Shown here piece by piece: positions 857-57,451 of a stretch of 64,000 nucleotides of DNA. The first letter of the stretch is position 1. Every line of letters starts with the position of its first letter. Made by a program: the position numbers and the translations under genes. Under the pieces are notes generated by a model, which was given only the letters and a program-made list of their open reading frames with translations, had not been told where the DNA came from and did no database searches. Source of the stretch: Rhodosorus marinus CCMP1338 (lineage: Eukaryota; Plantae; Rhodophyta); the NCBI GenBank assembly GCA_029953675.1, contig JAMWBK010000005.1:2976001-3040000 (forward strand), written 5' to 3'.

Positions 857-2449
857 TATCAAGATGCCGGGGCCTGACCAGATTCTGGTACGGCCACAAA
901 ATCTTGAAAGGAACGTTATAAAAACTTCGGATTTTAATATCTGCTGGGCATTGCCGTCAGAACTGGGCGCACTCCGATGTTGGCCAATCAAACGTTGCGT
1001 GTTATTTACTTCGGCTTCTATATTTCTGGTAGTTTTCGCAGTAATTGTCATTGAAAAGCTTTAGGTTGCGGGCTATCATCCTGCCAGCAACTACTTATTT
1101 ACACCAGCAACTACTTTACACCAGCAACCGTGCAAACTGGTGTTTTGAGGTTTGGTGGGGGGTCATGGTCACCTGTGGTTCCCGTTCTTGTCTGGCTAAG
1201 AGCATGTGGGATATAAGGAACTCTAGCAGCGAGATGAGCGCTTTTTGTTTCCCAAGCCTTTTCTGCGCTTGCTTAACTTTTCAAAATTACCACCCCCCCC
1301 CCTTCCTCTCCTCCCCAGGGTTCAACGTTTCCAAGAGCCAGTGACCATTTTCCAACTCTTGCCCAATCCGAAAATTTTCTTTGCCAATTTCCACTCTACA
1401 ACAATGTTTCCTTCGAGCGCAAGTTGGGTACGTTATTATATCCAATTTTCAAGCCAGGTTAAATGTTACTGGAAACCGAGAAAATACAGGTTAAGCAAGG
1501 TAGTTTTTATTAGGAAACACTAAAATGTACACGTGCAACTTGTACAACAGTTTGTACAATGAACAGAATTGGTTTCGGAAAGGGACGATGACGATGACAG
1601 CATCCATATTGACCGGACACTAGTCCGGCCTGAGTGACGTTTCTGGAATGTTGCCGATTGGAGTGCAAGAGCATGGGTTATAGATTTTTGGAACCCGTAT
1701 TTTTTGCTGATGGAAAGCGGGCAGACCGACTCTCCAGATAAGGTGGTGGGGTGCAACCGGAGCAGGAGAAACCTGACGAAGTCCGGTAATTCTTCGCTTT
1801 TTTAGAGGTTATTCTGAAGCTTGCAGAGCTCGCCCGCCGTGTTCTGGTTTGGACTTGCGTCTTGGACAAGCTTGGAGGCTTCGTGCGCAAAAGACCTGCC
1901 CTGGGCGAACGTTTTCGTTCGTTCTCACATCCGGTTCCCTTTGGACGTTCCCAATCGATACCTCCGAGCATTCTGAACGGGTACTCCAGACTCAGTATAC
2001 TGCTTCAAGTTGGAAGCTCGTCCAGCAAAACCAATTCAGTCTACCTCGTTCCAAGTTCCCTGAGTACTTGTTCAAATGATTCAGTACTGAGCACTGAGCA
2101 TCACTTCCGTGCGGGATTTAATGAACTACCAAGGACGATCATTGCGAGTAAACAACAGCTTTTGTGCGAAACCGCGAATGCACTGCTTCCTCGTGACCGA
2201 CGGTTTCCTTGTTTGCCTTTCCGAGGGTCCTAAACAGCGTTGTCGGCGAATTTTATGCTTCATGCAAGGATGTTGTAACTTTTTGCCTTCCTGTCACTAG
2301 GTTCAAAAATTGGTGGTGAAACTAGCTTATCCCTGCATTGCCAGACACACATCGAGGAGAGTAAACTCTCGGACCCCAAGCTTAATTGTTGCATCGTCAA
2401 TCACTAGCAAGTGAGGGTTCCAGCACTGACACAATTGTTTGCAGTGCTC

Positions 2450-3140
2450 ACAACTTTAGCCATACCTTGCTCAGCAATATGATATTGGATGTGTAAACGT
2501 CTCTGCAGCCACAACCGTAGCAATTGTACCCTGGACAGTAGTGTCTTGTTCATCAAATCCCGGAAACCGATGTTCCTGCACAGGAGATAATTTGGAAGCT
2601 GCCGCTTGATCTCTTAACGTTTGAAGAACTCCGGCACCAAGGCTGAGTCTCTTAGCCGCGAGCAATATTGGTTGAAGAGTTTTACACTCCGTGGAAGCGT
2701 TTTGGTTCTGTTTAGTCAAAGTCTCTGTCCGGGTTAAATATGAGCCAGACTCGTCCGGGACACGCTAACGTCCTGTCAAGATACAATCGACAGAGGAGCT
2801 TGGAGAGTTCAGACGGGTATGCGTCAGTTGCTGAATAGTGCCTGGAATTTTCTCAGAATATGAAACTACTGAAAAGTCTAAACGCGCAGAGAGAAAGTAA
2901 CGCCATCATGTATTCTAACGGTGTCGGCTAGCGAGGACAAGCACCGGACGCCCAATTGAAGCCTCCGCAGAATCCGCGAACATCCGATTGCGCTTGCTAG
3001 TGTACAGTGCTCCAGAGGCTGATATCGGAGAATCCTAGCCTCGGCACTTAACGTAACTGTTCGAAAATTGTACTCCAGAGCTCGTCCTTTTATCCCCATA
3101 ATCTCAGCAGGATCCCACAGACCTGAACCACTTCGCATGG
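2450..3140 (-). pseudogene. Highly decayed LINE-type reverse transcriptase remnant
   Basis: Ordered minus-strand fragments LRYQPLEHC..RILRRL (cf. NYRPISLL..K..RIL..RL), LYLDRTLA (cf. FLDxxKAFD) and GVLQ..SKLSPV (cf. GVPQGSxLSP), broken by stops and frameshifts. Confidence 0.3.
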
Positions 3141-4534: not shown

Positions 4535-7500
4535 ATGGTTTTAGGGGATCAGCCTTCCAGTGGAATAAGAAAGAGCACGAGGTATGGATGATAGCGTGAA
4601 TGCGTAATGTTGAATATAGTTTTCCTCGGCGTCATCAGGAGAATTCTACCCACCTTGATGGTTGTAGAGCGAATGAAATTGTTTCCTGTCAAGGTTGGTA
4701 CTGATTGTCATGTGATCATGTATAGGATTGGATCGAGAAAAAGCGTGGCCTGGAAAGAATTTGTAGAAGTTGTAAGTGTTGGTTCAGGTGAACCCCCGAA
4801 GAAGCGAGTTGTGAAACTAGGCAGCCCTCAGACTCACAAACGCAACCGAGAAACAGCAGTACAGGGAAGATCCGGACAGATTCGTAGAGAAGTCGGGTAT
4901 TCCCGTAGACGACGGAGAAGCATGTCTCGAGAAGACGGAGATAGTGAAGATGACGGTCGACATGAAAATGGGCGGGATGTCGCTGGGAAAGGTCCAGCGG
5001 AATTGAGTGGTGACCTTGTATATAGCGCGCGGGGGAGGCTCAGGAGGAGGGTAAATCTGAATGAGGAAGAGATGTTTGAGGACGAACTCGAGGATGAGCG
5101 ACCATTGGCAAAGCGAAAAAGTGATAGCCTCACGAGGAGAAGAAGCTATAACTTAACTTCAAAATCGGAGTCACAGTCACACGATTCGAGCCCTGGAAAG
5201 ATCGCTTACACGACACGGGCGGGGAGAACCAGCAGCAGAAACTCCAAATACGATCTTTACGATGACAGCGACGACAATGATTCTATGGTTACGGAAACAC
5301 GATCGAAACGAACACTCCTCAGAAATGGTGAGCGGGCGCTGCGTGCTCAGGATGAGCACGAGGAGGATGTTGACGACAGCAGCGGTCTTCGACGGAGCTC
5401 ACGCAAGCGAAGCAGTCCAGCACCGTACGCTCATCGAGACGACCACATCAATGGGGAGAAGATGTCAAACGACTCCGTCAAGGAGGAACCAAAGTACACC
5501 CCTCGAAGCAACACGGTAAGCCGAACCCCGGCCGTCACTGGTGACGTACCTACTGGTTCTCGGAGGGCGCTCAATTCCGTTTCTTCTTTTCTCAACGCAC
5601 CTGATAGGACGGGAGTTCGGATGACGGAAAACCGATCCGCCGTAGCGGACGCCTAAGAAGACAACCGAGCAAGTCCTCTCCATTGCGGGAGGATCTAGCT
5701 TCACCGAAAATTAATCAACGACAGCGGCTGCAGCGAGTGCGGGACAGGGAGCAGAGATACATGCGACGCTCTTCGCAACCCAAATCTAGTCCGTTCGAAC
5801 CTGAACATGAATCAGATGACTTCAAGAGAAATTTACGGCCGAGATCAAGCAGAAGATCACTTCGGGAAGTACCAGACAGTCAAATAGAGGTCAGAAGACG
5901 TAGTAGGGATTCTTCTGATGACGCATATAGCGCAAACTCGTCTGAGGACGACGATACCGCTACAGTGGCCCACATGTCGGAGGAAGAGAAATACGATATG
6001 GCGAAAACGGCAAATCAGATGCAGGACCTTCCGCCTCGAGAGCTGAGACAGCCACGAGAACGTGCGCAAGTACCTGCTCATATTGCAGACTTGGCCCGAG
6101 AGGCTCGGGATTCTAGGAGGCCTCGCTCGTACCGACCTCGAGTCAGAGACATTCTTTTCGATCAGGTGAAGACCGGGGGTGAATCGAAAAAGCCTGCGAT
6201 TGAACCGGTGAAGGTTGACCCGTCCATTACTTGGGACGTTGTAGGGGGTCTTGACTCGCACATTCGGGCTCTAAAGGAGATGGTACTGTTGCCATTGTTG
6301 TATCCCGAGGTGTTCAAGAAATTCAAGTTGGAGCCTCCGAAGGGGGTTCTCTTCTACGGCCCACCGGGCACTGGAAAAACCCTCTGTGCGAGAGCGCTGG
6401 CAGCTAGCGCCGGAATTATTCCGTCCACGGACAAGGACGGTACGAATCAAAGTTCGAAGCCAGAGTCGCCTTGTTTCACTGTGCTGATGGCTTTGGTCTT
6501 GTTGCAAAATAATACAGGCAAGGCCGTCCAGACGTCTAGGGTCTCTTTCTTTATCAGGAACGGCGCGGATTGCCTAAGTAAATGGGTGGGTGAAGCTGAA
6601 AGGAATCTGCGACAGCTTTTTGAGGTTGCCAAAAAGCACCAGCCAAGCATCATCTTCTTCGACGAAATTGATGGATTGGCCCCAGTACGCTCGTCAAGGC
6701 AGGATCAGATTCACAGTTCGATTGTGTCCACTTTATTGGGACTGATGGACGGCCTGGAAGCTCGGGGACAGATCGTGGTGATTGGGGCGACGAATCGAGT
6801 GGATTCTATCGACCCGGCTCTGCGCCGTGCTGGTCGTTTTGATCGCGAACTAATCTTCAAGCTACCTAATCATGTCGCGAGAAGGCGGATCTTGGATATT
6901 CATACAAGCAAGTGGGATGTGAAACCCGAAGAGAGCCTCCTGCGTGAGTTGGCGGACAGAACCGTGGGCTACTGCGGCGCAGATTTGAAGTCACTCTGTA
7001 CGGAAGCGTCGCTGAGGGCATTGCGACGAAGGTACGTCACCATGATTTGACTCTTTCTCTCGTTTCCGATTGTCAGGAAGCCTTTGGTGTAGAACGCTCT
7101 CTAAGGCGCCACCGCTCTCCATTGTTGTGATGTTCACAAAGATACCCGCAAATCTACAAGTCCCAACAGAAACTCGAGATTGACCCAGACCAGGTCAAGA
7201 TCATGGGAATCGATTTCTTCCTCTCAATGCAATCGATTGTACCATCCAGTCATCGGTCAAGCTTGGTCCAAGCTCGTCCGCTGAGCGGTCGAGTTGCACC
7301 TCTGCTGGATTCTGCTTTCGGCGAAGCGAAGAAAAAGCTACGGGACATCTTCCGACAAGGAACGGTGAACTCAGCAGACTTTGCGCTTGGAGATGAAGCA
7401 CAGGAGGATGGGGACTCCGATCTAGAGCTATTCTATGATGAGGAAGTTTCGAAGGACGCGGGCAATCGTATGGGCACCCTCGAATCAATCGCGAGGTCTA

Positions 7501-9300
7501 TGCAACAGCCAACCACACGCCCACGTTTACTAGTTTGCGGCAAACCTGGTATGGGCCAAGTACAAATAGCCCCGGCCATTCTCCACGCACTGGAAGGCTG
7601 TCCAGTCTTTGGGATTGGAATGACGTCCTTATTCTCAGATCAGAACGCGAAGACACAGGAGGAAGCTCTCGTAACCGCTTTCCGTGAGGCTTCTAGGGCA
7701 GCCCCTTCGGTGAGACGTAGTTTTCTTTCACGGCCTGGGCATAGTGTTAGACGATAATGACTGACGCTTTCTTTCCCCGCTAGGTTTTGTACATACCTCA
7801 CCTTGACATGTGGTGGGGCACGGCCGCGGACTCGCTGAGAGCTACATTCATTCAAGCCCTCCAGGACATGCCAACCCTCCTACCGGTGTTAGTACTCGCA
7901 AGCTCACAGGTAATGAGGAAACGCTTTTTGTTTTACGCGGCAATCGCGCCCTGCAGATGACTAATGGCTGTTGTGGCTGCGTTCTTCTCCACCAGTGTGA
8001 AGACTTTGAACTCTCCAGCGAACTGCAGTTTGAGTTCGTCGACCACCTTTCCATGGATTGTCCCACTTCCGAGCAGAGGTACAATTTTTTCGGAGCACTG
8101 CTAGTGGACATTGCTTCACCAGCGATCATGATTGATCCTTCGCTGAAGGCTGCTCGAGACGCTAGGCATCAGGAGGTGCTGAAGGTGGCGCCTCCCCCCG
8201 AACGAACTCAGCCTTCGGAGGAGGAGAGAGCCAAAAGCCAAAAGAGCGACGAACAGAGTCTCAGAGCAATGCGAATGGAGATGAGAGAGCTCTTAGCAAG
8301 GCTCTTAAACGACCGCAAGTACATGGTGGGTTTACCCACCGGGTTTTTGTGGACTGCAGTCATATTTTTGACTTTAGAGAGGCTTCTCCTTTTCCTTTCA
8401 TCGCAGGTTTTCTGGAATCCCGTTGATCCCGAAGAAGCTTCCGACTACTACGAAATTATTAAGCGCCCTATCGATCTTTCGATGATCGCTGCGAATGTGG
8501 ACGCTGCTCGATACTCCGCAGTAATGCATATGGTGTCCGATGTAGACCTGATGGTCCAAAATGCGATCGAGTACAACCCTCCGCACACAGAGCAAGGGGC
8601 TAGAATCTTGAGGAGGGCTCATGCGCTCATTGACCTCGTCCACTGTTGGGCTGACGCCTTGGATAAGGACCTGGTATCCGCCTGCAACCAAATCGTTGTG
8701 CGGAAGAAACAGGAGGAAGAGAATAAGAGGAAACAGGAAGGGCAAAAGGCGAAGGTAGAGGAGGAAGAGAAGAAAAAATCGGAAGAGGAAGATAAGAAAC
8801 CGAAAGCAGAAAGCGATGCAGTCGAACCGAAGCCGAGCAATACCCTCAGTGCTCTCATGAATGGGACAACTACAGCGGAGGACTTGGTATCGGGAAGCGG
8901 AATGTTGAATCCGGACGCAATGCAAATAGAGCCTCCGGTTCCAAACGCTGAATCCGACGCGCGGACCAAAGCAGAAGTCCCGAAAGATGTTGGGGCGCCG
9001 GGGTTCAGAAAACATACAGTGCCATCTCCGTTGAACGCCGATCGTGAACCAAAGGGCAGACCCATTCCAGAGGCGAAACTCTCGAGTGACGTTCAAAGCT
9101 TCCTCGATCATCTCGTGGCCGGAACAGAAGGTGCAAACCTGGATACGTTGGAGACTATCCATGGGGCGCTTGCATCTGTGCTTTATGCAAATCGCAAGAA
9201 TCCGGATAGAGTAGAGGTCTTGAAGAGTCTTCAGCAACGCTTCGAACGTCTAAAACCGCAGAAGTTGCTTCAGAACGAAGCGGCTGAATCCCGGGCGTGA
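4535..9300 (+). CDS. ATAD2: ATAD2/Yta7-like AAA+ ATPase with bromodomain (multi-exon; start approximate)
   Basis: Walker A GPPGTGKT, Walker B IIFFDEID, SRH IGATNR..ALRRAGRFDRE, degenerate second AAA domain, and bromodomain VFWNPVDPEEASDYYEIIKRPIDL..NAIEYN, after a long charged N-terminus. Intron 5516-5607 (GTAAGC..TAG) joins ORFs 4607 and 5683 in phase 0. Confidence 0.93.
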
Positions 9301-20250: not shown

Positions 20251-21339
20251 TAATCAAAGCTAAATAGACACTGTGGTCAATGCTCATATGTCCCTATCAA
20301 AAGTTTTCCTCATCTGTAGCCCATCGATCTTCTTAGAAAAAAAACGACATTCGCTTGTCCACGTTGCTTACCGATAGAACAGAAGGTCGAGGTTTACTCG
20401 ACGACGAATTCCTGAAACAGGAATGCGCAGTACCTGTTTCAGGTACTACGCCATTAGTCCCTTCTCCCTCTCCATCTGGCCGCTTTGATTGGATTCCCGC
20501 AGCTCAGCACTCACAGTGCTATGTTTGGGGAGCAACTTCCTAAGGAGACTCCATTATTATCCTCGTCAGCGATTGTTTCACTTTCCCAATAGGTCAGCAC
20601 TCTTCCTCGCTACGGGCAGAACGCGACGAGTTCTCTCCATTTCTTGCCTCCCATGGTCCAAGCAACAGCCTGCGTTCATTCAGCCGTCTCCCTCTTGGCG
20701 ATCTTGGACCTTCGTGCTCGGCAGGAATCTTGTAATTCTAAAAAATATGTATTATCATAGTCAAAAGTCATCCTACCGAACAAGCAGAGGCAAAAAGGCA
20801 GTCTATGGCGACCTATCCTCCTCCAAACCAGCACAAGGAGAGCATCAGATCGTTCCAAAATCCGATTCTAGCTACTCGTGCTAGTCCTCCAAACTAACCC
20901 GAAAGCAGCAATGGACTCCAAGAAAGAAAAAATATATATATAGATAGCTCGACATCCGCTCGAAGAAGCTCAAAAACAACCGCGCTGACTAACCAAGTTC
21001 CGCACAACCTCTAAGAAAACCTCCTCCGCCCGGAAACAGACCACTAACTATCCATAAGCAATCAAAAAAAACTTTGCTCAGTAGCTAGAGCTGCAAAGCA
21101 TCTGCTCCAAACGTCCAGACCTTTCCCCAGCACACTCAACGCCCTACCGCCCAAGCCATCCACAAAACGGCCTATGCACTCCCTAAGGAAGCCGATTGTC
21201 ACCGCTGGTGCCACTAAAAAGGGAGATAGAATAATAGAAACTTTAGAAAGTATTATTCATCGTAAACCCACAATAGGTTGTTATATTTTTGTTATGATGT
21301 ATATATAGACATTAAATTCGCTGAATTGGTATGACCGTG

Positions 21340-22450
21340 CTTGAACAGGATCAGTTCTATAGGTCATCAACTTCCTTAGTCTTCAAAATAGACACACATT
21401 TCAGCCGAGGATGATGATCTTAGTGTTGTTGGGCGGAATGGGATGTCTGCTGGGACTCGTATCTGGTTCTTCCAGGGGGGGTGTTCAGTCTAGAAGATCG
21501 CGCCTGAAAGTCCGTTAGTGACTGGATGGCAGCTCAGCAACCGATCTAACCGGTAAACACTTTTTGTCCATCGGTTCCAGACGATCGCTCGTTGGGATGT
21601 TCTTAGTGTTGTTGGGCGGAATGGGTGTCTGCTGGGACTTGTATCCGGTTCCAGACGATCGCTCATTAGGATGTTCTTAGTGCTGTTGGGCGGAATGGGA
21701 TATCTGCTGGGACTCGTATCTGGTTCTTCCAGAGGGGGTGTTCAGTCTAGAAGATCGCGCCTGAAAGTCCGTTAGTGACTGGATGGCAGCTCAGCAACCT
21801 ATCCAACCGGTAAACACATTTTGTCCGTCGGCTCCAGGCGATCGCTCGCTAGGATGCTGGGAGGAATGGGATGTCTGGTGGGACTCGTATCTGGTTCTTC
21901 CAGAGCGGGTGTTCAGTCTAGAAGATCGCGCCTGAATGTCCATTAGCGACTGGATGGCAGCTCAGCAACCGATCTAACCGTAAACACTTTTTGCCCGTCG
22001 GTTCCAGAGGGACTTGTCAGTCGAAACGATCGCTCGTTACTCTGTTCTTACTGTTGCTGGGCGGAATGGGATGTCTGGTGGGACTCGTATCTGGTTCTTC
22101 CAGAGGGGTGTTCAGTCTAGAAAATCGCGTCTGAATGTCCGTTAGCGACTGGATGGCAGCTCAGACACCCAATCCCACCGGTAATCGCCTTCTGCCCGTC
22201 GGTTCCAGAGCTTGTTCAGTCCAAAAGATCGTCCATTCGTGACTGGATAGCATGTGAGCGACCGATCTAACCGGTGATCGCTTTTTGCTCGTCGAGGGCT
22301 TCCTACTACTGTACAAACGAACAGGATTAGGTTTACTCGTCATCAACTTCCTTAGTTTTCGAAACAGACACACGTTTCCTCCGGGAGGATGATGATCTTA
22401 GTGCCTTGGGCGGAATGGGATGTCTGCCAGGACACGAATCTGGTTCTAAA
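21340..22450. repeat. Nested tandem array: four well-conserved units of about 170-200 bp plus partial units, bracketed by a diverged direct repeat of about 125 bp
   Basis: The core GGGCGGAATGGGATGTCTG..GGGACTCGTATCTGGTTCTTCCAG..GTGTTCAGTCTAGAAGATCGCG recurs near 21430, 21690, 21865 and 22060. Segment 21344-21470 resembles 22319-22447. Confidence 0.95.
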
Positions 22451-36825: not shown

Positions 36826-38749
36826 ATGGATCAAATGCCCGCTTTTTGCGTAGTGCTTGCTTCGGCCGGTGGCAAACCGCGGGGAAAGAGTGAAAACCAC
36901 AAGAGGCGACGGGCGCGGGTCTTCAGGCCTAGGACAAGCCCTATTGATGGGAAACAGATGGAATTGGGACGATTCCCTCAACAGGCGGATGCGGAGGACG
37001 TAGAAAAGAAACCCAGCCGGGGATGGTCCCATGAGTACAGTAGGGAATTTTTGGCCATCTGCCAGGCACAATTCGAGGTTCTCGCACAGATTGTGAACGC
37101 ATCACAGTGTGTACTATATTTGAGGCGTGAAAGATATATTCCAAACGATAAGGAGTATCCACTTGATGACAGTACCTCAGACGACCAAGATTTGGAATTC
37201 ATACCAGTTTGCACATTCCCTGAGCATGGATCCGCAATGGTTGTTGGTGAGGACGGTCAACCTAGGCTGGCTCATCAGCGCCTACCCGGTGGCGTTTCTG
37301 CTACCTCATTGGTTCCGGAGTATCCCTACCTTGCGCCGGAGGGAAGTACGGTGAGACAAACGGAGGATGGGTCCTTAGTTGTACCCGTCATGAGTGGACA
37401 TGATCTTATTGGCATTCTCACCACATGGAAAGGACGAACTGGCTCGGAGAATCAGTCGGCCTCCAAACGGAAAGAATTCTCTTTCATGAACGAAGTTTTG
37501 AAGCTAGTAAAACAGGCGGACCGCCGCGAAGCGAATAAGGATAGAGGCGGGTCTGGGGAGACGAACCAATGGACCGAGCTGGAAATCGAGCGCGTCACTC
37601 AAGTGGCAAGCACCCTTGCTCTTGCCTGCTTGTTGGATCAGAGGACCCAAGAATCTGAAAGATCTCGACAGGAACAACTTAAGGTCCTGGCACAGCTACG
37701 CTCTCTACTGTCGACGGTTCTGCACCAAGTCAAATCACCCCTCGGGGCTCTTGTAACATTTGGAAAGCTGCTCCTTCGGCGACTTCCGGTCGGGGACGTT
37801 AGTCGAGATCTTGCCAGGGACATATTGATTCAATCGGAGCGTATGCAGGAGCTCCTCATACCGCTTGATGGACCTAGCGAGGAACAGCTTGAGCAAAGAT
37901 CACCGAAGGAAAGGCGTTTGAGGCAGAGCGCCAAAAAAAGAGACTATGCCACAGACGTACCATATTTTGAACTGGAAGCGGCGAAGGACAGTTCAACGGA
38001 GACCGAGGTCACGGCAGTGGAGGGTAAGGAGCACAGTAGCCGTGCTGAATGAAACCTTTCATATTGTTCTCGCCTCGGAAAACTGAAGCAAAAACGCGTT
38101 TTGTTTTCTGTGCGGATAGAGCTGTTCTCTGAGTTGGAAATGAGGCGCTGCTGGCTATCAGAATTGATTCTTCCAGCAGTCGATACATGGAGAGCGCTGT
38201 CCGCAGAGGCGAGTCTGAGACTGATACCTTTCGTTGACGAGGACGCCCCACCATGCTTTGTTGACGCGACAGCAGTGGTTGAGGTGATGAACAACCTGGT
38301 TGACAATGCGATCGCGTATACGCCGTCGCCTGGCACGATTGAAGTCTCGCTTGCACCTGTATGATACTGCATTAATCGTTTCGCATAAGTTTTTTTGGTG
38401 TCTGCTACGGCCTGGAGTATTTATCCTTGTCTTCTTGCTCTTCTGTTTCTTTGTCCAGACTGCTGATGAGCAAGGAGTCGTATTTCGTGTAAGAGATACA
38501 GGCTATGGGGTGTCGAAAGATGAGATGGATTCGATCTTCGACAGAGGATTCAGAGGTTCCGCAGCTGAAAAGTGCGAGCTAGAGATGGGTGGCAAGGGGT
38601 TGGGCCTGCATATAGCGAAAGAGATCGTTGAACGCATGAACGGTAAAATTTTCCTTGAAAGCCCGAGCGGAATTGGAGGAGTGTTACCCGGGACCTCAGC
38701 ATCAGTTGTATTTGACAGAAGCGTGGTGACCTCCTCGAAGCAAGAGTAG
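36826..38749 (+). CDS. CSK: Chloroplast sensor kinase (CSK) / cyanobacterial Hik2-like GAF-HisKA-HATPase histidine kinase, three exons
   Basis: GAF region ICQAQFEVL..LACLLDQR, H-box LHQVKSPLGALVTFGKLLLRRL, N-box NNLVDNAIAYT, G1 VRDTGYG, F-box IFDRGFRG and G2 GKGLGLHIAK. Leader MDQMPAFC. Confidence 0.85.
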
Positions 38750-39001: not shown

Positions 39002-40679
39002 TCAGATGTTGCCGCAGACAGCGAGGAGTGCCTCATCCGTCATACGAGAGGTCCACCAGGGCACCTCGCAGAAGGGGCCGCCAACCCCCATTGCGATAAA
39101 TATCATTCCAAGAAAACCTCCAAAGAGGATAGTGATCGGCGCGGCATACTGGAAGAAGACGCTCAAACCGGTTGTGAAAGTTGCAATGGCGAAAGCCAGC
39201 GGGGAAGAGAGCGATTTCATGAGGAAGAAGTACACGGCAGAGTTGATCAGCCCACCAGCAGCTGAAGAAGTCGACAATGGATTCCAACGATACAGGAGAC
39301 CAAAAACTCTTGGTTAGTGATGCTCAACTCTTGGCAAGGTTCCAAATAAGCAAGGGTTTGATCGACCTACAGGCAGTCACTCCTGGCAGACAAGCAGTGA
39401 TCAGTTTCGTCTTCCTAAGACTTCCCCAGAAGGGCAGAACCGCGAACACAAGCAAGACTCCAGGTCCGAACATGCCAACCGCGCTCACAAAGGCGCCAGG
39501 CAGACCCGCAACGGCAGCGCCAACGAAGGGCGCAAGGTTGAACATCGGACCTGGCATGACTTGTACTAGGGCAAATCCGTTGAGGAAGACTTCTATTGAG
39601 AGAAAACCCCTTTTCACGACCTCGTTCATCATCATTGGAAGAACGACCTGTTGGTGTTTCAAAGACGTTTGGGGAAAGGAGAGCAAGAACTATCATATCA
39701 GCCAGGGTCCACGGTGCCTAGATCAGCAATCTCGGGGTGGTTGATTTCTCCTAACCTGTCCGCCTCCGAAAACGAGAGCTCCCATTCTCCAAAATGCGTC
39801 AAACATGCGGAACAGCACGGGGCTAGGTGAACCGAAAACGGCGTCGATGAGGAACAGAAGCGCGGTAACTCCTCCGAAAACGCCGAAGAGGATGTTTGCA
39901 GTTTTTGTGGTAATGTCTCTGGAGAATTCCATGTTGATGTCTTGGTCAGAAGTGGAAACATCGGTGGCAGACATTGAATCCTTGATGTAGTTGATGAGAC
40001 CACCCCCAGCGAGCAGCAAGGGGTACATCCACTTCACTTGCGTGGGTGGCGTTACGACGGCGGCAGCCGTTGAAATCATCACGATGACCGCTTTGACCTT
40101 ATCGCCCTGTATTACTCGATGTGTGATTGAGACAGCTGCGATCGTAACTTGAGCGAAGGCGGCGGCGATTAATCCATGTGTGAAGAGCGAGATGGTGTTC
40201 AAGACGCCTCCACCACTTCCGTTGAGCATGAGTCCAAAAAATGTCATGAAGAAGAAGCCGGGGAGTTGGAACAGGAAGAAGGACAAGAGTCCACCCATCC
40301 ACCCCGCCTGTACAATCCCAAGAGCGGTGACAAGCTGTGTGGAAGACGGTCCAGGAAGCGCCTGACACATCGAGAAAAGCTCCAAGAACATCTGCTCGGA
40401 GACGCCAAGGATCGTTTGCTTGTCAACAAACTGCTCGTGGAGCAGTGCGACATGCGCTACGGGACCTCCAAAAGCCACCAGCCCAAGAGATCCAAACGCT
40501 CGAGCCAATTCCCTCCACGTCGCCTCGGAAACCTCCTCCTTCCCGACATCATTCTCCTTCAGAACATCGGCCGTAGTCGGAACCTCCAAATCAGCCTTCT
40601 CCTCCACCAACCCAGCTACATCCTTAATCCCCTTCTCAAGATCCTCCTTACCCTTCTCTAACAACTTATCCGACTCCAT
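39002..40679 (-). CDS. chrA: CHR family (ChrA-like) chromate/oxyanion transporter, two-domain long-chain type
   Basis: Two homologous halves, LGLVAFGGPVAH..CQALPGPSSTQ and GALVFGGGQV|VLP..VQVMPGPMFN, with many hydrophobic segments. Confidence 0.9.
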
Positions 40680-49566: not shown

Positions 49567-51006
49567 ATGAAATGGGGAAAGGCTCTTAACGCGAAGGTGG
49601 AGGAGACTCCAGAGTGGTCTCCGTATTTTCTGAACTTTAAGAGTATGAAGAAGGAGCTCAAGGCTGTCAAGGAGATGAACTCCAGAGGTGTTGAGTTTAA
49701 AGGTAGGAACAGGTCTAGCTGTTGTCCATTGTCTTTCTCTTCGAATCTTGGTTTGAGTACTCTTACTGAGGTTGGATGTTCTTCGCATCACGTAGCCGCT
49801 TTGGCGTAGTCGTCTTTGGTGGGTTTAGTTTGGGAATCGTACTGAGATGGAGTTTGTATTTCTATGTGCTCAGAACGAGACTTGGACATGCACGGACTGA
49901 CTACACGCGAGTCTGATTCCAAGGAAAAACTGCTGAAATGTACGACGGACGCAATCGTGCCGTTCCTGGACAAGCTGAACGCGGAGATTGCAACCATTGA
50001 GACTTTTTTTGTAGCAACACTTACACAACTAGAAAAGAAGCTGAATGAGATCGAACGAGAACGCCGGGCATCGGTAAGTCGAGGAAAACCTCTTTGGTCC
50101 GGGTATCGCGAACTTAAGTAGCATCGAAATCGCTGAGTGTGGAAACGTTGGGTGATCTTGTGCGTGATGCAGGATGACGAACAGAAAGGAGTTTTGGCCC
50201 TGCGGGAAATCAACCGCAGCCTGAACGCGCTGGAGGAGTTCTCGCGGCTGAACTACATCTCAGCAGCAAAAATTCTGAAGAAGCTTGACAAGAGCATGGA
50301 GTCCGAGGTGAAAACAATCTACATTACTGAGATACTCAATGTTCAGACGTTCCACACTGCGCTCTCTTCGACTCTCCGAAACTTGAGCGAAAGAGTGGAT
50401 GCAATTTTAAGCGCAGGGTCTGATGTGTTCATGGCAAACTCGGGAAGCGACAACTTCAACAAAAACGCCCGGCAACGGTCAAACAATGCAAGGGATCTGA
50501 ACAATGACGTGGAGACGACTGAGGTCCTGCGACATGTTTCACTTTGTGTACCGCTGCGGCGAACTGATGGAGAACTCGAGGTTCTTGTCGTAACCGAAAA
50601 CGACGGCTCTCCTCACCTAGTGAAAGCACATATTGAGGCCGGAGAGACGAGTGTAGAAGGTAGTGCATTCATCAACCCCCTCAACGGACTTGACAAAAAG
50701 CGACTCACGAATATCACTATATATGGGTTTTTCTTTTGCTTCCTGATAGCGTTACTTCGGGAAATGAGCGAATTGGCAGGTTTGGCTGTGGGCCAAGAGC
50801 GAAATGTCGGGGAGTATCTGTCCACCACGAAGAAGAACACCGTTTACTACGCGTATACGGTGGTTGTCGAGCGCGAGCTTGAGGATTGGCCAATGGCTAC
50901 AACCGTTCGAAGACGATGGCTGCAGATAGACGAATTGATTTCCGAGCTCGAAGACAACACGGGAGTCCGGGTGCTGAGAAAGATCAATGAGAGTCCGCCC
51001 ATTTGA
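49567..51006 (+). CDS. SPX domain fused to a DIPP-type (plant NUDT17/18-like) Nudix domain, four exons
   Basis: SPX: MKWGKAL..PEWSPYFLNFKSMKKELK, FLDKLNAEIATIETFF and LEEFSRLNYISAAKILKKLDK. Nudix: LRHVSLCVPLRR..EVLVV..KAHIEAGETSVE|ALLREMSELAGL..ELEDWP..RRRW. Introns 49703-49873, 50074-50172 and 50660-50749 are all phase-consistent. Confidence 0.85.
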
Positions 51007-56179: not shown

Positions 56180-57451
56180 ATGGAGAGCGTTCGGACGCTG
56201 ACGGGTTTTGCTTTGCAAGCGTCCCCTCCGCAGGGAGGTTTGAAAGCTGAAGCCTGTCCAAATTACCGCCTTTTCGAGAATTGGGACGGGAAAAATTGTC
56301 CTATGATGCTTCTGTAAGTCTGAAGAACCCCTTCGTTCTTGTTGCTTTCGAGTCTCTTGGCTTTGCTGAACGAGTTTTTCTCCACACCCAGGGCTCCTAT
56401 GGAGGTTCTGGCTGATAAACAGTTCAGAAAGGCCGTGGCAACGGTCGGTGGAATGGACGAGATGGTAATGGAGTTCATTAGAATCCCTGATCAAGGTCAT
56501 CCACGAAGCCTCGCGAATCGCTACAAGTCGGATGAGCTTGGGTCGATGACCATATCACCACAGGTGGGTATCAAACATCTGACGAGCTTGACGGTCGATC
56601 CTCGATCATATGTGGTAACTGAAACGAAACTATCCACCTTTCAACACGTTCAATAGGTCATGGGATCCCACGATCAGCGAATGTGGGTAGCAACTCGTGA
56701 GCTGGTCAAGCGCGGCGCGTACCGAGTGGACTTGAACTGCGGATGCCCGGCATCGAGGGTGACCAAGAAAGGAAGCGGTGCGAGCCTCCTGAAGACGCCG
56801 TCAATTCTCGGAGGGGTTGTTCGAAGTATGATCGGTTCTGGACCGGATAAATTTCCGAACATTTCGGTGAAGATGAGGAGCGGGTTTGAGGATACACAGT
56901 TGTTCCTTGAGAACGTGTACTCGGCGATTGATGGTGGTGCCAGAGCAATCACTGTACATCCAAGAACAAGCTACCAGAAGTATAGTGGACGGGCGGATTG
57001 GAACCTCATCAGAGAGGCCAGGAAGATTAGCACCGTTCCGATCATCGGGAATGGGGACATAACCAGCGTCCAACGAGCAGCGGAGATTGTTGAATCAACC
57101 GGTTGCGATGCTATCATGATCGGCAGAGGAGCTGTCCGAAACCCTTGGCTGTTCCACGAGATCCGTGGCCACTTCACTGGCCAGACCATTGCTCCTCCAA
57201 GTATCAAAGATGAATGGACTTTTTGGAGTACTTATAGGCAAGCTGGGCGAGAGTTCGGAGGAACAGCTCGTGGGAACACGGGAAGGCTCAAGATGATCCT
57301 GGGGTACTATTTCGACAAGTGTACCTGGATGAAGGAAGCCAAGGCTCGCTTGCTGCGTTCTCGCCACGTGGATGACGAATCGTTTCTGTACGAAATCATT
57401 GACGTCCTTGAGCAGCATCGAAAACACTGCTCCGAGTGCAGCTTCGAATAG
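56180..57451 (+). CDS. tRNA-dihydrouridine synthase (Dus family, bacterial type), probably organelle-targeted, three exons
   Basis: LL|APMEVLAD..FRKA, PQ|VMGS, VDLNCGCPASRV..GSGASLLK, SVKMRSG, VHPRT, PIIGNGDI and IMIGRGAVRNPWLF. Confidence 0.92.

Follow-up and report, generated by a model that had tools for sequence, protein, structure and literature searches.

A gene within the 64,000-nucleotide stretch of the Rhodosorus marinus CCMP1338 genome analysed here (hereafter the window; contig JAMWBK010000005.1, positions 2,976,001 to 3,040,000) encodes a genuine, expressed two-domain protein, in which an SPX domain is followed by a Nudix-fold domain with a degenerate Nudix box. SPX domains read inositol pyrophosphate (PP-InsP) messengers and Nudix enzymes of the DIPP type destroy them, the two jointly setting phosphate homeostasis in fungi, plants and animals; the fusion forms a natural link between the sensing and the degrading arms of PP-InsP signalling. 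Taking sequences and structural models together, we favor the interpretation (probability about 0.65) that the protein is a real SPX-DIPP fusion in which the Nudix domain would act as a non-catalytic module.

The reference Nudix box, G-x5-E-x7-R-E-U-x-E-E-x-G-U, contains three metal-binding glutamates. In the spliced 359-residue product the box (residues 264-286) reads A264-HIEAG-E270-TSVEALL-R278-E279-M-S-E282-L283-A-G285-L286, with Ala in place of Gly at box position 1 and Leu283 (TTG, 50773-50775) in place of Glu at position 20, exactly as an earlier prediction made from the DNA letters had it. This is a residue-level reading that carries no chance statistic, and conservation is the relevant test. 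In an alignment of 11 family members position 20 is never Glu or Asp (0/11), position 1 is never Gly (0/11), and position 16, the glutamate of the RE pair, is Glu in 3/11, which leaves the family without a catalytic Nudix box; only one of the three box glutamates is retained in 8 of the 11 members. The loss of the first Gly and of the last Glu singled out in the original prediction is shared by the orthologues. Ranked by column entropy, positions 16 and 20 stand at the 91st and 94th percentile of the domain; residues that are invariant in active Nudix enzymes and define them are thus, in this alignment, among those under the least constraint in the red algal family. In the same columns Gly6 (G269), Glu7 (E270), Arg15 (R278) and Gly22 (G285) are invariant and position 19 is Glu or Asp in 11/11, and the full box is kept in human DIPP1 and in the three nearest stand-alone relatives (Physarum P0028, P0047, P0143).

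The pattern of loss and retention can be read against the biochemistry of the DIPP enzymes. In Ddp1, residues Arg79, Glu80 and Glu83 form a structural triad and Glu84 (position 20) ligates Mg1 (PMC8064635); the box residues that survive in the red algal family are those that are structural in Ddp1, and the residue lost everywhere is the Mg1 ligand. The Ddp1 mutants E80Q and E83A are inactive (PMC8064635), the Aps1 double mutant E89A-E93A (positions 16 and 20) has lost hydrolysis of polyphosphate (polyP) and of IP7/IP8 (PMC11323792), and NUDT9-type enzymes with RIL or KK variants of the box retain ~1% and 0.1% of the wild-type kcat (PMC6461439). Judged from sequence and model, the domain probably carries out no canonical Nudix hydrolysis.

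Loss of these residues has not been accompanied by relaxation of the domain as a whole. Between the window coding sequence and the transcript of a close relative (L001, below), the ratio of nonsynonymous to synonymous substitution rates (dN/dS) is 0.15 for the Nudix-like part and 0.07 for the SPX domain, as compared with 0.58 for the linker, and six residues are invariant and specific to the family (R219, N222, N223, D224, D343 and R348). Conserved loss of catalytic residues under purifying selection is the signature of a pseudoenzyme. Because the losses are common to all members and the domain is under purifying selection, the sequences describe an old, conserved pseudo-Nudix and not recent decay. 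The pseudo-enzyme status put forward in the original prediction is borne out to this extent, the last Glu and first Gly being lost in all homologues found and the RE glutamate in most.

The ancestry of the domain is well marked. Pfam recognizes both halves of the protein, PF03105 (SPX) with an E value of 5e-10 (40.4 bits against a gathering cut-off of 27.8) and, for the isolated C-terminal part, PF00293 (NUDIX) with an E value of 1e-8 (35.7 bits, cut-off 21.1). An AlphaFold2 model built on the family alignment (mean predicted local distance difference test score, pLDDT, of 80) consists of an SPX helical bundle (residues 3-200), a disordered linker (195-229) and a Nudix fold (232-355, pLDDT 81-93) with the box helix at 272-284. 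Foldseek comparison with the PDB places DIPP1 (6wof), NUDT4 (7nnj) and DIPP3 (3mcf) at the top ranks, with template modelling (TM) scores on the target of 0.78-0.83 and RMSD of ~2.5 Å, and gives a probability of 1.00 to many Nudix structures, consistent with the alpha/beta/alpha fold of the Nudix superfamily; the N-terminal half matches the SPX domain of XPR1 (target TM 0.81). A phmmer search of the PDB with residues 219-359 returned human DIPP1/NUDT3 first (E 5e-6), followed by DIPP2, DIPP3 and then the Ap4A hydrolase NUDT2, and a profile of the 11 family members matched DIPP1/2/3 at ~1e-13, an oomycete Nudix effector at 6e-10 and Ap4A hydrolase at 5e-6. Thus, whether by sequence, by profile or by fold, residues ~232-345 match best to the DIPP group (DIPP / NUDT3-4-10-11 / Ddp1 / Aps1 / plant PP-InsP-hydrolysing NUDTs), and both the closest sequence relatives and the closest structural relatives are DIPPs; therefore, as far as sequence and model can tell, the fused domain descends from the DIPP/NUDT3/Ddp1/Aps1 family of inositol-pyrophosphate/polyphosphate hydrolases. 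The red algal domain and the DIPPs have in common the strand YKK-x-A-x-C-(V/L)-x-x-R, the motif ELEDW...R-x-W-(F/L)-x-I-(D/E) and, within the box, Glu7, Arg15, Glu19 and Gly22.

Beyond the box, the substrate pocket has been altered (residues in DIPP1 numbering; contact roles from PMC7619153 and PMC8064635). The position of Arg115 is V, I or T in every family member, and Ddp1 Arg152, which aligns with DIPP1 Arg115 by position, has been called essential for coordination of inositol phosphate and polyP (PMC8064635). The positions of Arg41 and of the Ser39-Ser40 loop are variable and often acidic across the family, with no basic residue in place of Arg41, the His91 position is Asn, and Trp46 and Pro49 are lost, whereas Arg115, Arg41 and Trp46 are all present in human DIPP1 and in the three stand-alone relatives with a canonical box. 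The polyphosphate clamp (Ser39-Ser40-Arg41 loop, Arg89/His91, Arg115 and Lys18) is not preserved as a set, Lys18 and Arg89 being mostly K/R. Retained are Lys18 (R/K, equivalent to Ddp1 Arg32), Arg27, the Lys of the 'PKG' motif (K263), Arg89/Lys90 (K/R), Trp107, Arg117 and Trp119.

Alongside these losses the family has motifs of its own. The segment R-D-L-N-N-D precedes the Nudix fold in a region of low model confidence that is predicted to be disordered, at the position of the conserved N-terminal arm of the DIPPs; it could represent a short linear motif, or else a strand missed by the shallow alignment. At the position of DIPP1 loop L2 the family consensus is G-E-[FY]-x-S-T-[TS]-[RK]-K-N-T-V-Y, and near the C-terminus is the motif E-D-N-[ST]-x-[IV]-R-[VI]-L-R, which includes the invariant D343 and R348. 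From the aligned sequences the old DIPP pocket appears remodelled, more than disarmed. Long low-complexity inserts rich in Ser/Thr or Gly/Ala were observed between β1 and β2 of the Nudix-like domain in P0007 (Porphyridium aerugineum) and P0012/P0159 (Pyropia vietnamensis), with a further low-complexity insert ahead of a conserved Trp of this domain in Pyropia; to judge from these sequences, the Nudix-like loops of these proteins evidently tolerate large inserts.

The gene model is well supported by transcripts. The gene (49567-51006, plus strand) runs from ATG to TGA through four exons with GT..AG introns throughout, and its 359-residue product matches the NCBI entry 'hypothetical protein NDN08_001895 [Rhodosorus marinus]' at 100% identity from end to end. 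R. marinus is a unicellular red alga, and the window DNA is eukaryotic, with short GT..AG introns. The JGI transcript contig L001 comes from a relative whose protein (P0002) is 89% identical to that of the window, with coding sequences of 91% nucleotide identity; it contains an equivalent open reading frame (ORF) that is intronless, and all three exon-exon junctions match base for base. P0003 (48% identity) and several MMETSP/EukProt transcripts are likewise continuous across the Nudix box. Intron 3, which splits the box, is in frame and free of stop codons, so that its retention would give a 389-residue protein with a 30-residue insert in the Nudix-box helix; no instance of retention was found among the homologues or transcripts compared. 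A different splice restoring the EE pair, which the original prediction had named as an outcome that would overturn it, is excluded: the codons of R278-E-M-S-E-L-A-G-L286 are contiguous within exon 4 (50758-50784), therefore no alternative acceptor could convert E-L to E-E, and the cDNA junctions are those of the model. On L002, the transcript-derived contig of P0003, a protein kinase ORF (1672-3030, minus strand) lies tail-to-tail with the SPX-Nudix ORF, ~340 nucleotides downstream of it, an arrangement that suggests either a genomic origin of L002 or overlapping 3' ends.

The SPX half appears from its sequence to be of the plant stand-alone type. The closest SPX structures found by sequence search of the PDB are OsSPX1 (7e40, E 1.6e-12) and OsSPX2 (7d3y). 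In AtSPX1 the phosphate-binding cluster (PBC) comprises Y25, K29 and K139 and the lysine surface cluster (KSC) K136, K140 and K143 (PMC7810988), and the window protein has five of these six residues (K28, K145, K148, K149 and K152), while all six are present in other family members; K145, K148 and K149 are invariant and K152 is at least 90% conserved in the family alignment (A2). These lysines match the PBC and KSC lysines of the stand-alone plant proteins (AtSPX1-4, OsSPX1/2), which are PP-InsP receptors controlling PHR transcription factors. The R. marinus protein differs from them in having Phe in place of the PBC Tyr and in its C-terminal pseudo-DIPP domain, whereas the plant proteins end after SPX.

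The substitution of the phosphate-binding Tyr by Phe, also noted in the original prediction, is confirmed by alignment: FLNFKSMKK spans residues 21-29, and F24 aligns with the Tyr of 'LSYKDLKK' in rice SPX1 and SPX2 and with AtSPX1 Tyr25 (PMC7810988). All other members covering the position have Tyr (NYK, HYK or NYN), with Phe confined to the window protein, and the closest relative, P0002, lacks NFKSM through a 15-nucleotide in-frame indel flanked by TGAA microhomology. The Tyr-to-Phe change therefore reads, in the aligned sequences, as a peculiarity of Rhodosorus or of the species and no feature of the SPX-Nudix architecture. The 15 nucleotides without counterpart in L001 (at about 100-105 of that contig) are AACTTTAAGAGTATG, corresponding to window positions 49633-49647 and to the helix with the Tyr/Phe position, and in the shortened P0002 sequence YFLKK a Tyr again stands four residues ahead of Lys. 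In yeast VTC the Y19F,Y22F substitutions cause partial ligand-independent activity and insensitivity to 5-IP7 (PMC10167327); by analogy, Phe24 could matter for the SPX response of R. marinus.

The fusion is widespread within the red algae. About a dozen homologues were found, all from red algae, including Porphyridium purpureum, P. aerugineum, Compsopogon caeruleus, Rhodella violacea, Rhodochaete pulchella, Pyropia vietnamensis and Rhodosorus-like transcriptomes (MMETSP/EukProt or NCBI); they span five classes (Stylonematophyceae, Porphyridiophyceae, Compsopogonophyceae, Rhodellophyceae and Bangiophyceae) and at least 7 genera. In an exhaustive profile search of 1.84 billion representative proteins only nine proteins fell below an E value of 1e-30, and no SPX-Nudix fusion from outside the red algae was present among the best 150 matches, the remainder being either SPX proteins of the ordinary kind (P0013-P0015 were checked) or canonical Nudix proteins that stand alone (P0028, P0047, P0143). 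A search of a word-indexed database of 5.8 billion proteins with the Nudix-domain profile gave a single weak match and did not recover the family members themselves, and is uninformative. Public databases label the family proteins only as 'hypothetical' or 'SPX domain-containing', and a literature search that included full-text phrases found no description of an SPX-Nudix fusion. A survey of the SPX family that includes three red algae lists no SPX-Nudix class (PMC8717665), and a 2026 review of PP-InsP phosphatases gives the Nudix type for fungi, plants and animals and names pseudoenzymes only for the PFA-DSP family (PMC13573052). As far as these sources show, a lineage-wide natural fusion of an SPX sensor with a catalytically stripped DIPP has not been described before.

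The last metal-binding Glu and the first box Gly were lost at or before the origin of the family, with the scaffold residues Glu7, Arg15, Glu/Asp19 and Gly22 kept. In the mechanism we propose, the domain would work as a non-catalytic module. The SPX domain, with 5/6 of the ligand residues in R. marinus and 6/6 in other members, would sense PP-InsP, and the dead DIPP domain would be the output or partner-binding module of that sensor. It might do so by holding a phosphorylated ligand in the remodelled site (the PKG lysine, the ST[TS][RK]KNT loop, R329 and R348) or by docking a protein partner. Several observations weigh against this interpretation. In Nudix enzymes the residues that bind metal or take part in catalysis are often supplied by parts of the protein outside the box, and conserved acidic residues outside the box are present here (E296, D343). 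The Rhodosorus clade (P0001-P0003) still has E279 and E282 of the three box glutamates, so that some residual or altered activity of the R. marinus protein is conceivable. The family alignment comprises only 11 sequences, the predicted TM score of 0.52 leaves the orientation of the SPX domain relative to the Nudix domain without confident prediction, and any ligand or partner of the pseudo-Nudix domain is hypothetical.

The original prediction went further, suggesting that the domain may bind PP-InsP or polyP instead of cleaving it, as a two-site sensor or buffer. Put specifically, the old DIPP pocket would still take up the ligand but leave it uncleaved, and the protein would sense PP-InsP at two sites or sequester the messenger as a buffer. 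Descent from a DIPP, the basic residues kept (K18 as R/K, the PKG Lys, R89/K90 as K/R, R117) and the S/T/K-rich loop at L2 are consistent with such binding, as are the precedents of Ddp1 E80Q and E83A, which lose catalysis yet keep substrate binding (PMC8064635), and of dead Aps1, proposed by its authors to sequester IP8 in vivo (PMC11323792). However, a conserved V/I/T stands in place of Arg115, variable and often acidic residues occupy the positions of Arg41 and the Ser loop, and His91 is Asn (PMC8064635, PMC7619153), while Mg1, which positions the diphosphate, is without its Glu ligand. The net charge of the domain (-2 to -7 across the family) also runs against binding of a polyanion, although it was dropped as a proxy because it does not discriminate, the human DIPP1 core being net negative as well. 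Because the family has lost Arg41, the Ser39-Ser40 loop, His91 and Arg115, the receptor reading is partly undermined by the sequences, and we consider two-site binding unlikely. A broader form of the idea, in which an SPX receptor and a DIPP turned non-cleaving second receptor or decoy share one polypeptide, is similarly doubtful. The dead DIPP would there hold PP-InsP or polyP, or capture an active PP-InsP phosphatase or another partner, under SPX control, and, if this is true, the protein would be a natural two-site sensor or buffer of phosphate status such as plants, fungi and animals do not have.

It is less probable still that the domain, at least in the Rhodosorus clade with its R-E-x-x-E, is an active hydrolase that has a non-canonical metal site or acts on another substrate. 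Retention of E279 and E282 in P0001-P0003 and purifying selection on the domain would fit such an enzyme, the Nudix catalytic base varies and may lie outside the box (PMC6461439), and E296 and D343 could in principle contribute. A re-purposed site would be expected to be conserved, but few columns vary more than positions 16 and 20, no member has an acidic residue at position 20 and most members (8/11) have a single box glutamate; moreover, equivalent mutations kill Ddp1, Aps1 and NUDT9 (PMC8064635, PMC11323792, PMC6461439). Given that intron 3 splits the box in frame, a mis-called splice was conceivable beforehand, and with it a mis-joined model or assembly chimera of SPX and a neighbouring Nudix gene. 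Continuous two-domain ORFs are present on the intronless transcript contigs L001 and L002/L003 and in at least 7 red algal genera, and the junctions are exact; two-domain transcripts from several genera rule out a gene-fusion artefact. A functionless, decaying relic is likewise ruled out by the dN/dS of 0.15, by retention across red algal classes and by the invariant family motifs, and we attach almost no weight to artefact or relic. The interpretation left as the most probable is the conserved, non-catalytic DIPP-derived module.

Retention of the Nudix fold as a binding module after loss of box glutamates is known from CFIm25/NUDT21 and the NrtR regulators, which belong to unrelated subfamilies and have different partners, RNA in one case and DNA-binding domains in the other. 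We know of no CFIm25/NUDT21 or NrtR protein that is fused to SPX. Within the DIPP family itself, the red algal proteins stand apart in lacking Glu20 (the Mg1 ligand), Gly1, Arg41, the Ser loop, Arg115 and Trp46 and, in most members, Glu16, and in having the SPX fusion and the motifs RDLNND, ST[TS][RK]KNT and EDN[ST]x[IV]R[VI]L[R]. The NUDT9-H domain of vertebrate TRPM2, with the box RILRQE, binds ADP-ribose without hydrolysis, and its invertebrate orthologues are still active (PMC6461439). It resembles the red algal domain as a degenerate-box Nudix fused to another functional module and differs in belonging to the ADP-ribose pyrophosphatase subfamily, with another ligand and an ion-channel partner, and in that ligand binding has been demonstrated. 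Dead Aps1-(E89A-E93A) of fission yeast keeps partial function in vivo, for which its authors suggest sequestration of IP8 (PMC11323792). It belongs to the same subfamily and has positions 16 and 20 removed as in the red algal family, but it was engineered in the laboratory and its substrate pocket is otherwise intact, whereas the red algal family is natural and ancient and also lacks the substrate contacts.

Should the dead domain bind PP-InsP, polyP or a partner, the family would provide a natural example of pseudoenzyme-based signalling in the PP-InsP pathway and an entry point to phosphate sensing in red algae, a field that is nearly blank. It would also offer a naturally occurring case in which to test the proposal, made for dead Aps1, that DIPPs devoid of catalysis can act by sequestration. 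If the domain is a structural appendage only, the result is a tidy annotation of a protein family specific to red algae. Coordinates of the gene and its features are collected in Table 1.

Table 1. Features of the SPX-pseudoNudix gene in window coordinates, followed by the residues at three Nudix-box positions in the 11 aligned family members.
Feature	Position	Strand	Basis or remarks
Whole SPX-pseudoNudix gene	49567..51006	+	Gene model; identity with NDN08_001895; Pfam SPX and NUDIX
Exon 1, residues 1-45 plus one base, SPX N-terminal helices MKWGK...YFLNFKSMKK	49567..49702	+	Model; junction matched by L001
Phe24, codon TTT, at the PBC Tyr position (AtSPX1 Tyr25)	49636..49638	+	Alignment to OsSPX1/2; PMC7810988
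Exon 2	49874..50073	+	Model and L001 junctions
Exon 3: end of SPX, linker, first half of Nudix-like domain to box position 11	50173..50659	+	Model and L001
KILKKLDK (K145, K148, K149, K152): lysine surface cluster and PBC lysine, all kept	50269..50292	+	Equivalent to AtSPX1 K136, K139, K140, K143
Variable linker, residues 191-218, predicted disordered	50407..50490	+	pLDDT <50 at residues 195-229; dN/dS 0.58
DIPP-like Nudix-fold domain, residues 219-359 (span includes intron 3)	50491..51003	+	PDB sequence and profile searches, Foldseek, pLDDT 81-93
Motif R-D-L-N-N-D, residues 219-224, just before the Nudix fold	50491..50508	+	R, N, N, D (R219, N222, N223, D224) invariant 11/11
Box positions 1-11 and first base of position 12 (A264...E274)	50626..50659	+	Gene model, alignment
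Intron 3, 90 nucleotides, GT..AG, splits the Nudix box	50660..50749	+	Not in L001 cDNA nor in any homologous transcript
Exon 4: remaining Nudix-like domain and stop codon	50750..51006	+	Model and L001
Box positions 12-23 (A275...L286); R278, E279 (50761-50763), E282 (50770-50772)	50750..50784	+	Model, alignment
S/T/K-rich loop S299-T-T-K-K-N-T305	50830..50850	+	Conserved; aligns to DIPP1 loop L2 (Arg89-His91), L2 role from PMC7619153
Box position 20 (last Glu), 11 members			L, L, S, V, V, A, Q, T, V, W, A
Box position 16 (RE glutamate), 11 members			E, E, E, A, G, V, G, G, K, S, H
Box position 1 (first Gly), 11 members			A, A, A, A, V, S, V, A, S, T, A

Elsewhere in the window, a full-length match to U3 small nucleolar RNA lies at 21331-21554 on the plus strand (Rfam RF00012, 48.6 bits against a gathering score of 34, E 1e-7). 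Two ORF pieces on the plus strand (5683-7050 and 7810-9300) contain an AAA ATPase domain (E 4e-39) and an AAA lid, as well as a bromodomain (E 1e-17), and are probably parts of a single ATAD2/Yta7-like gene that an intron interrupts. Further ORFs encode a chromate transporter domain (39723-40679, minus strand; PF02417, E 1e-28) and a dihydrouridine synthase (Dus) domain (56660-57451, plus strand; E 6e-44), and an ORF at 36826-38052 (plus strand) has a weak match to HisKA, the histidine kinase phospho-acceptor domain, at an E value of 1.6e-5, just under the gathering score.

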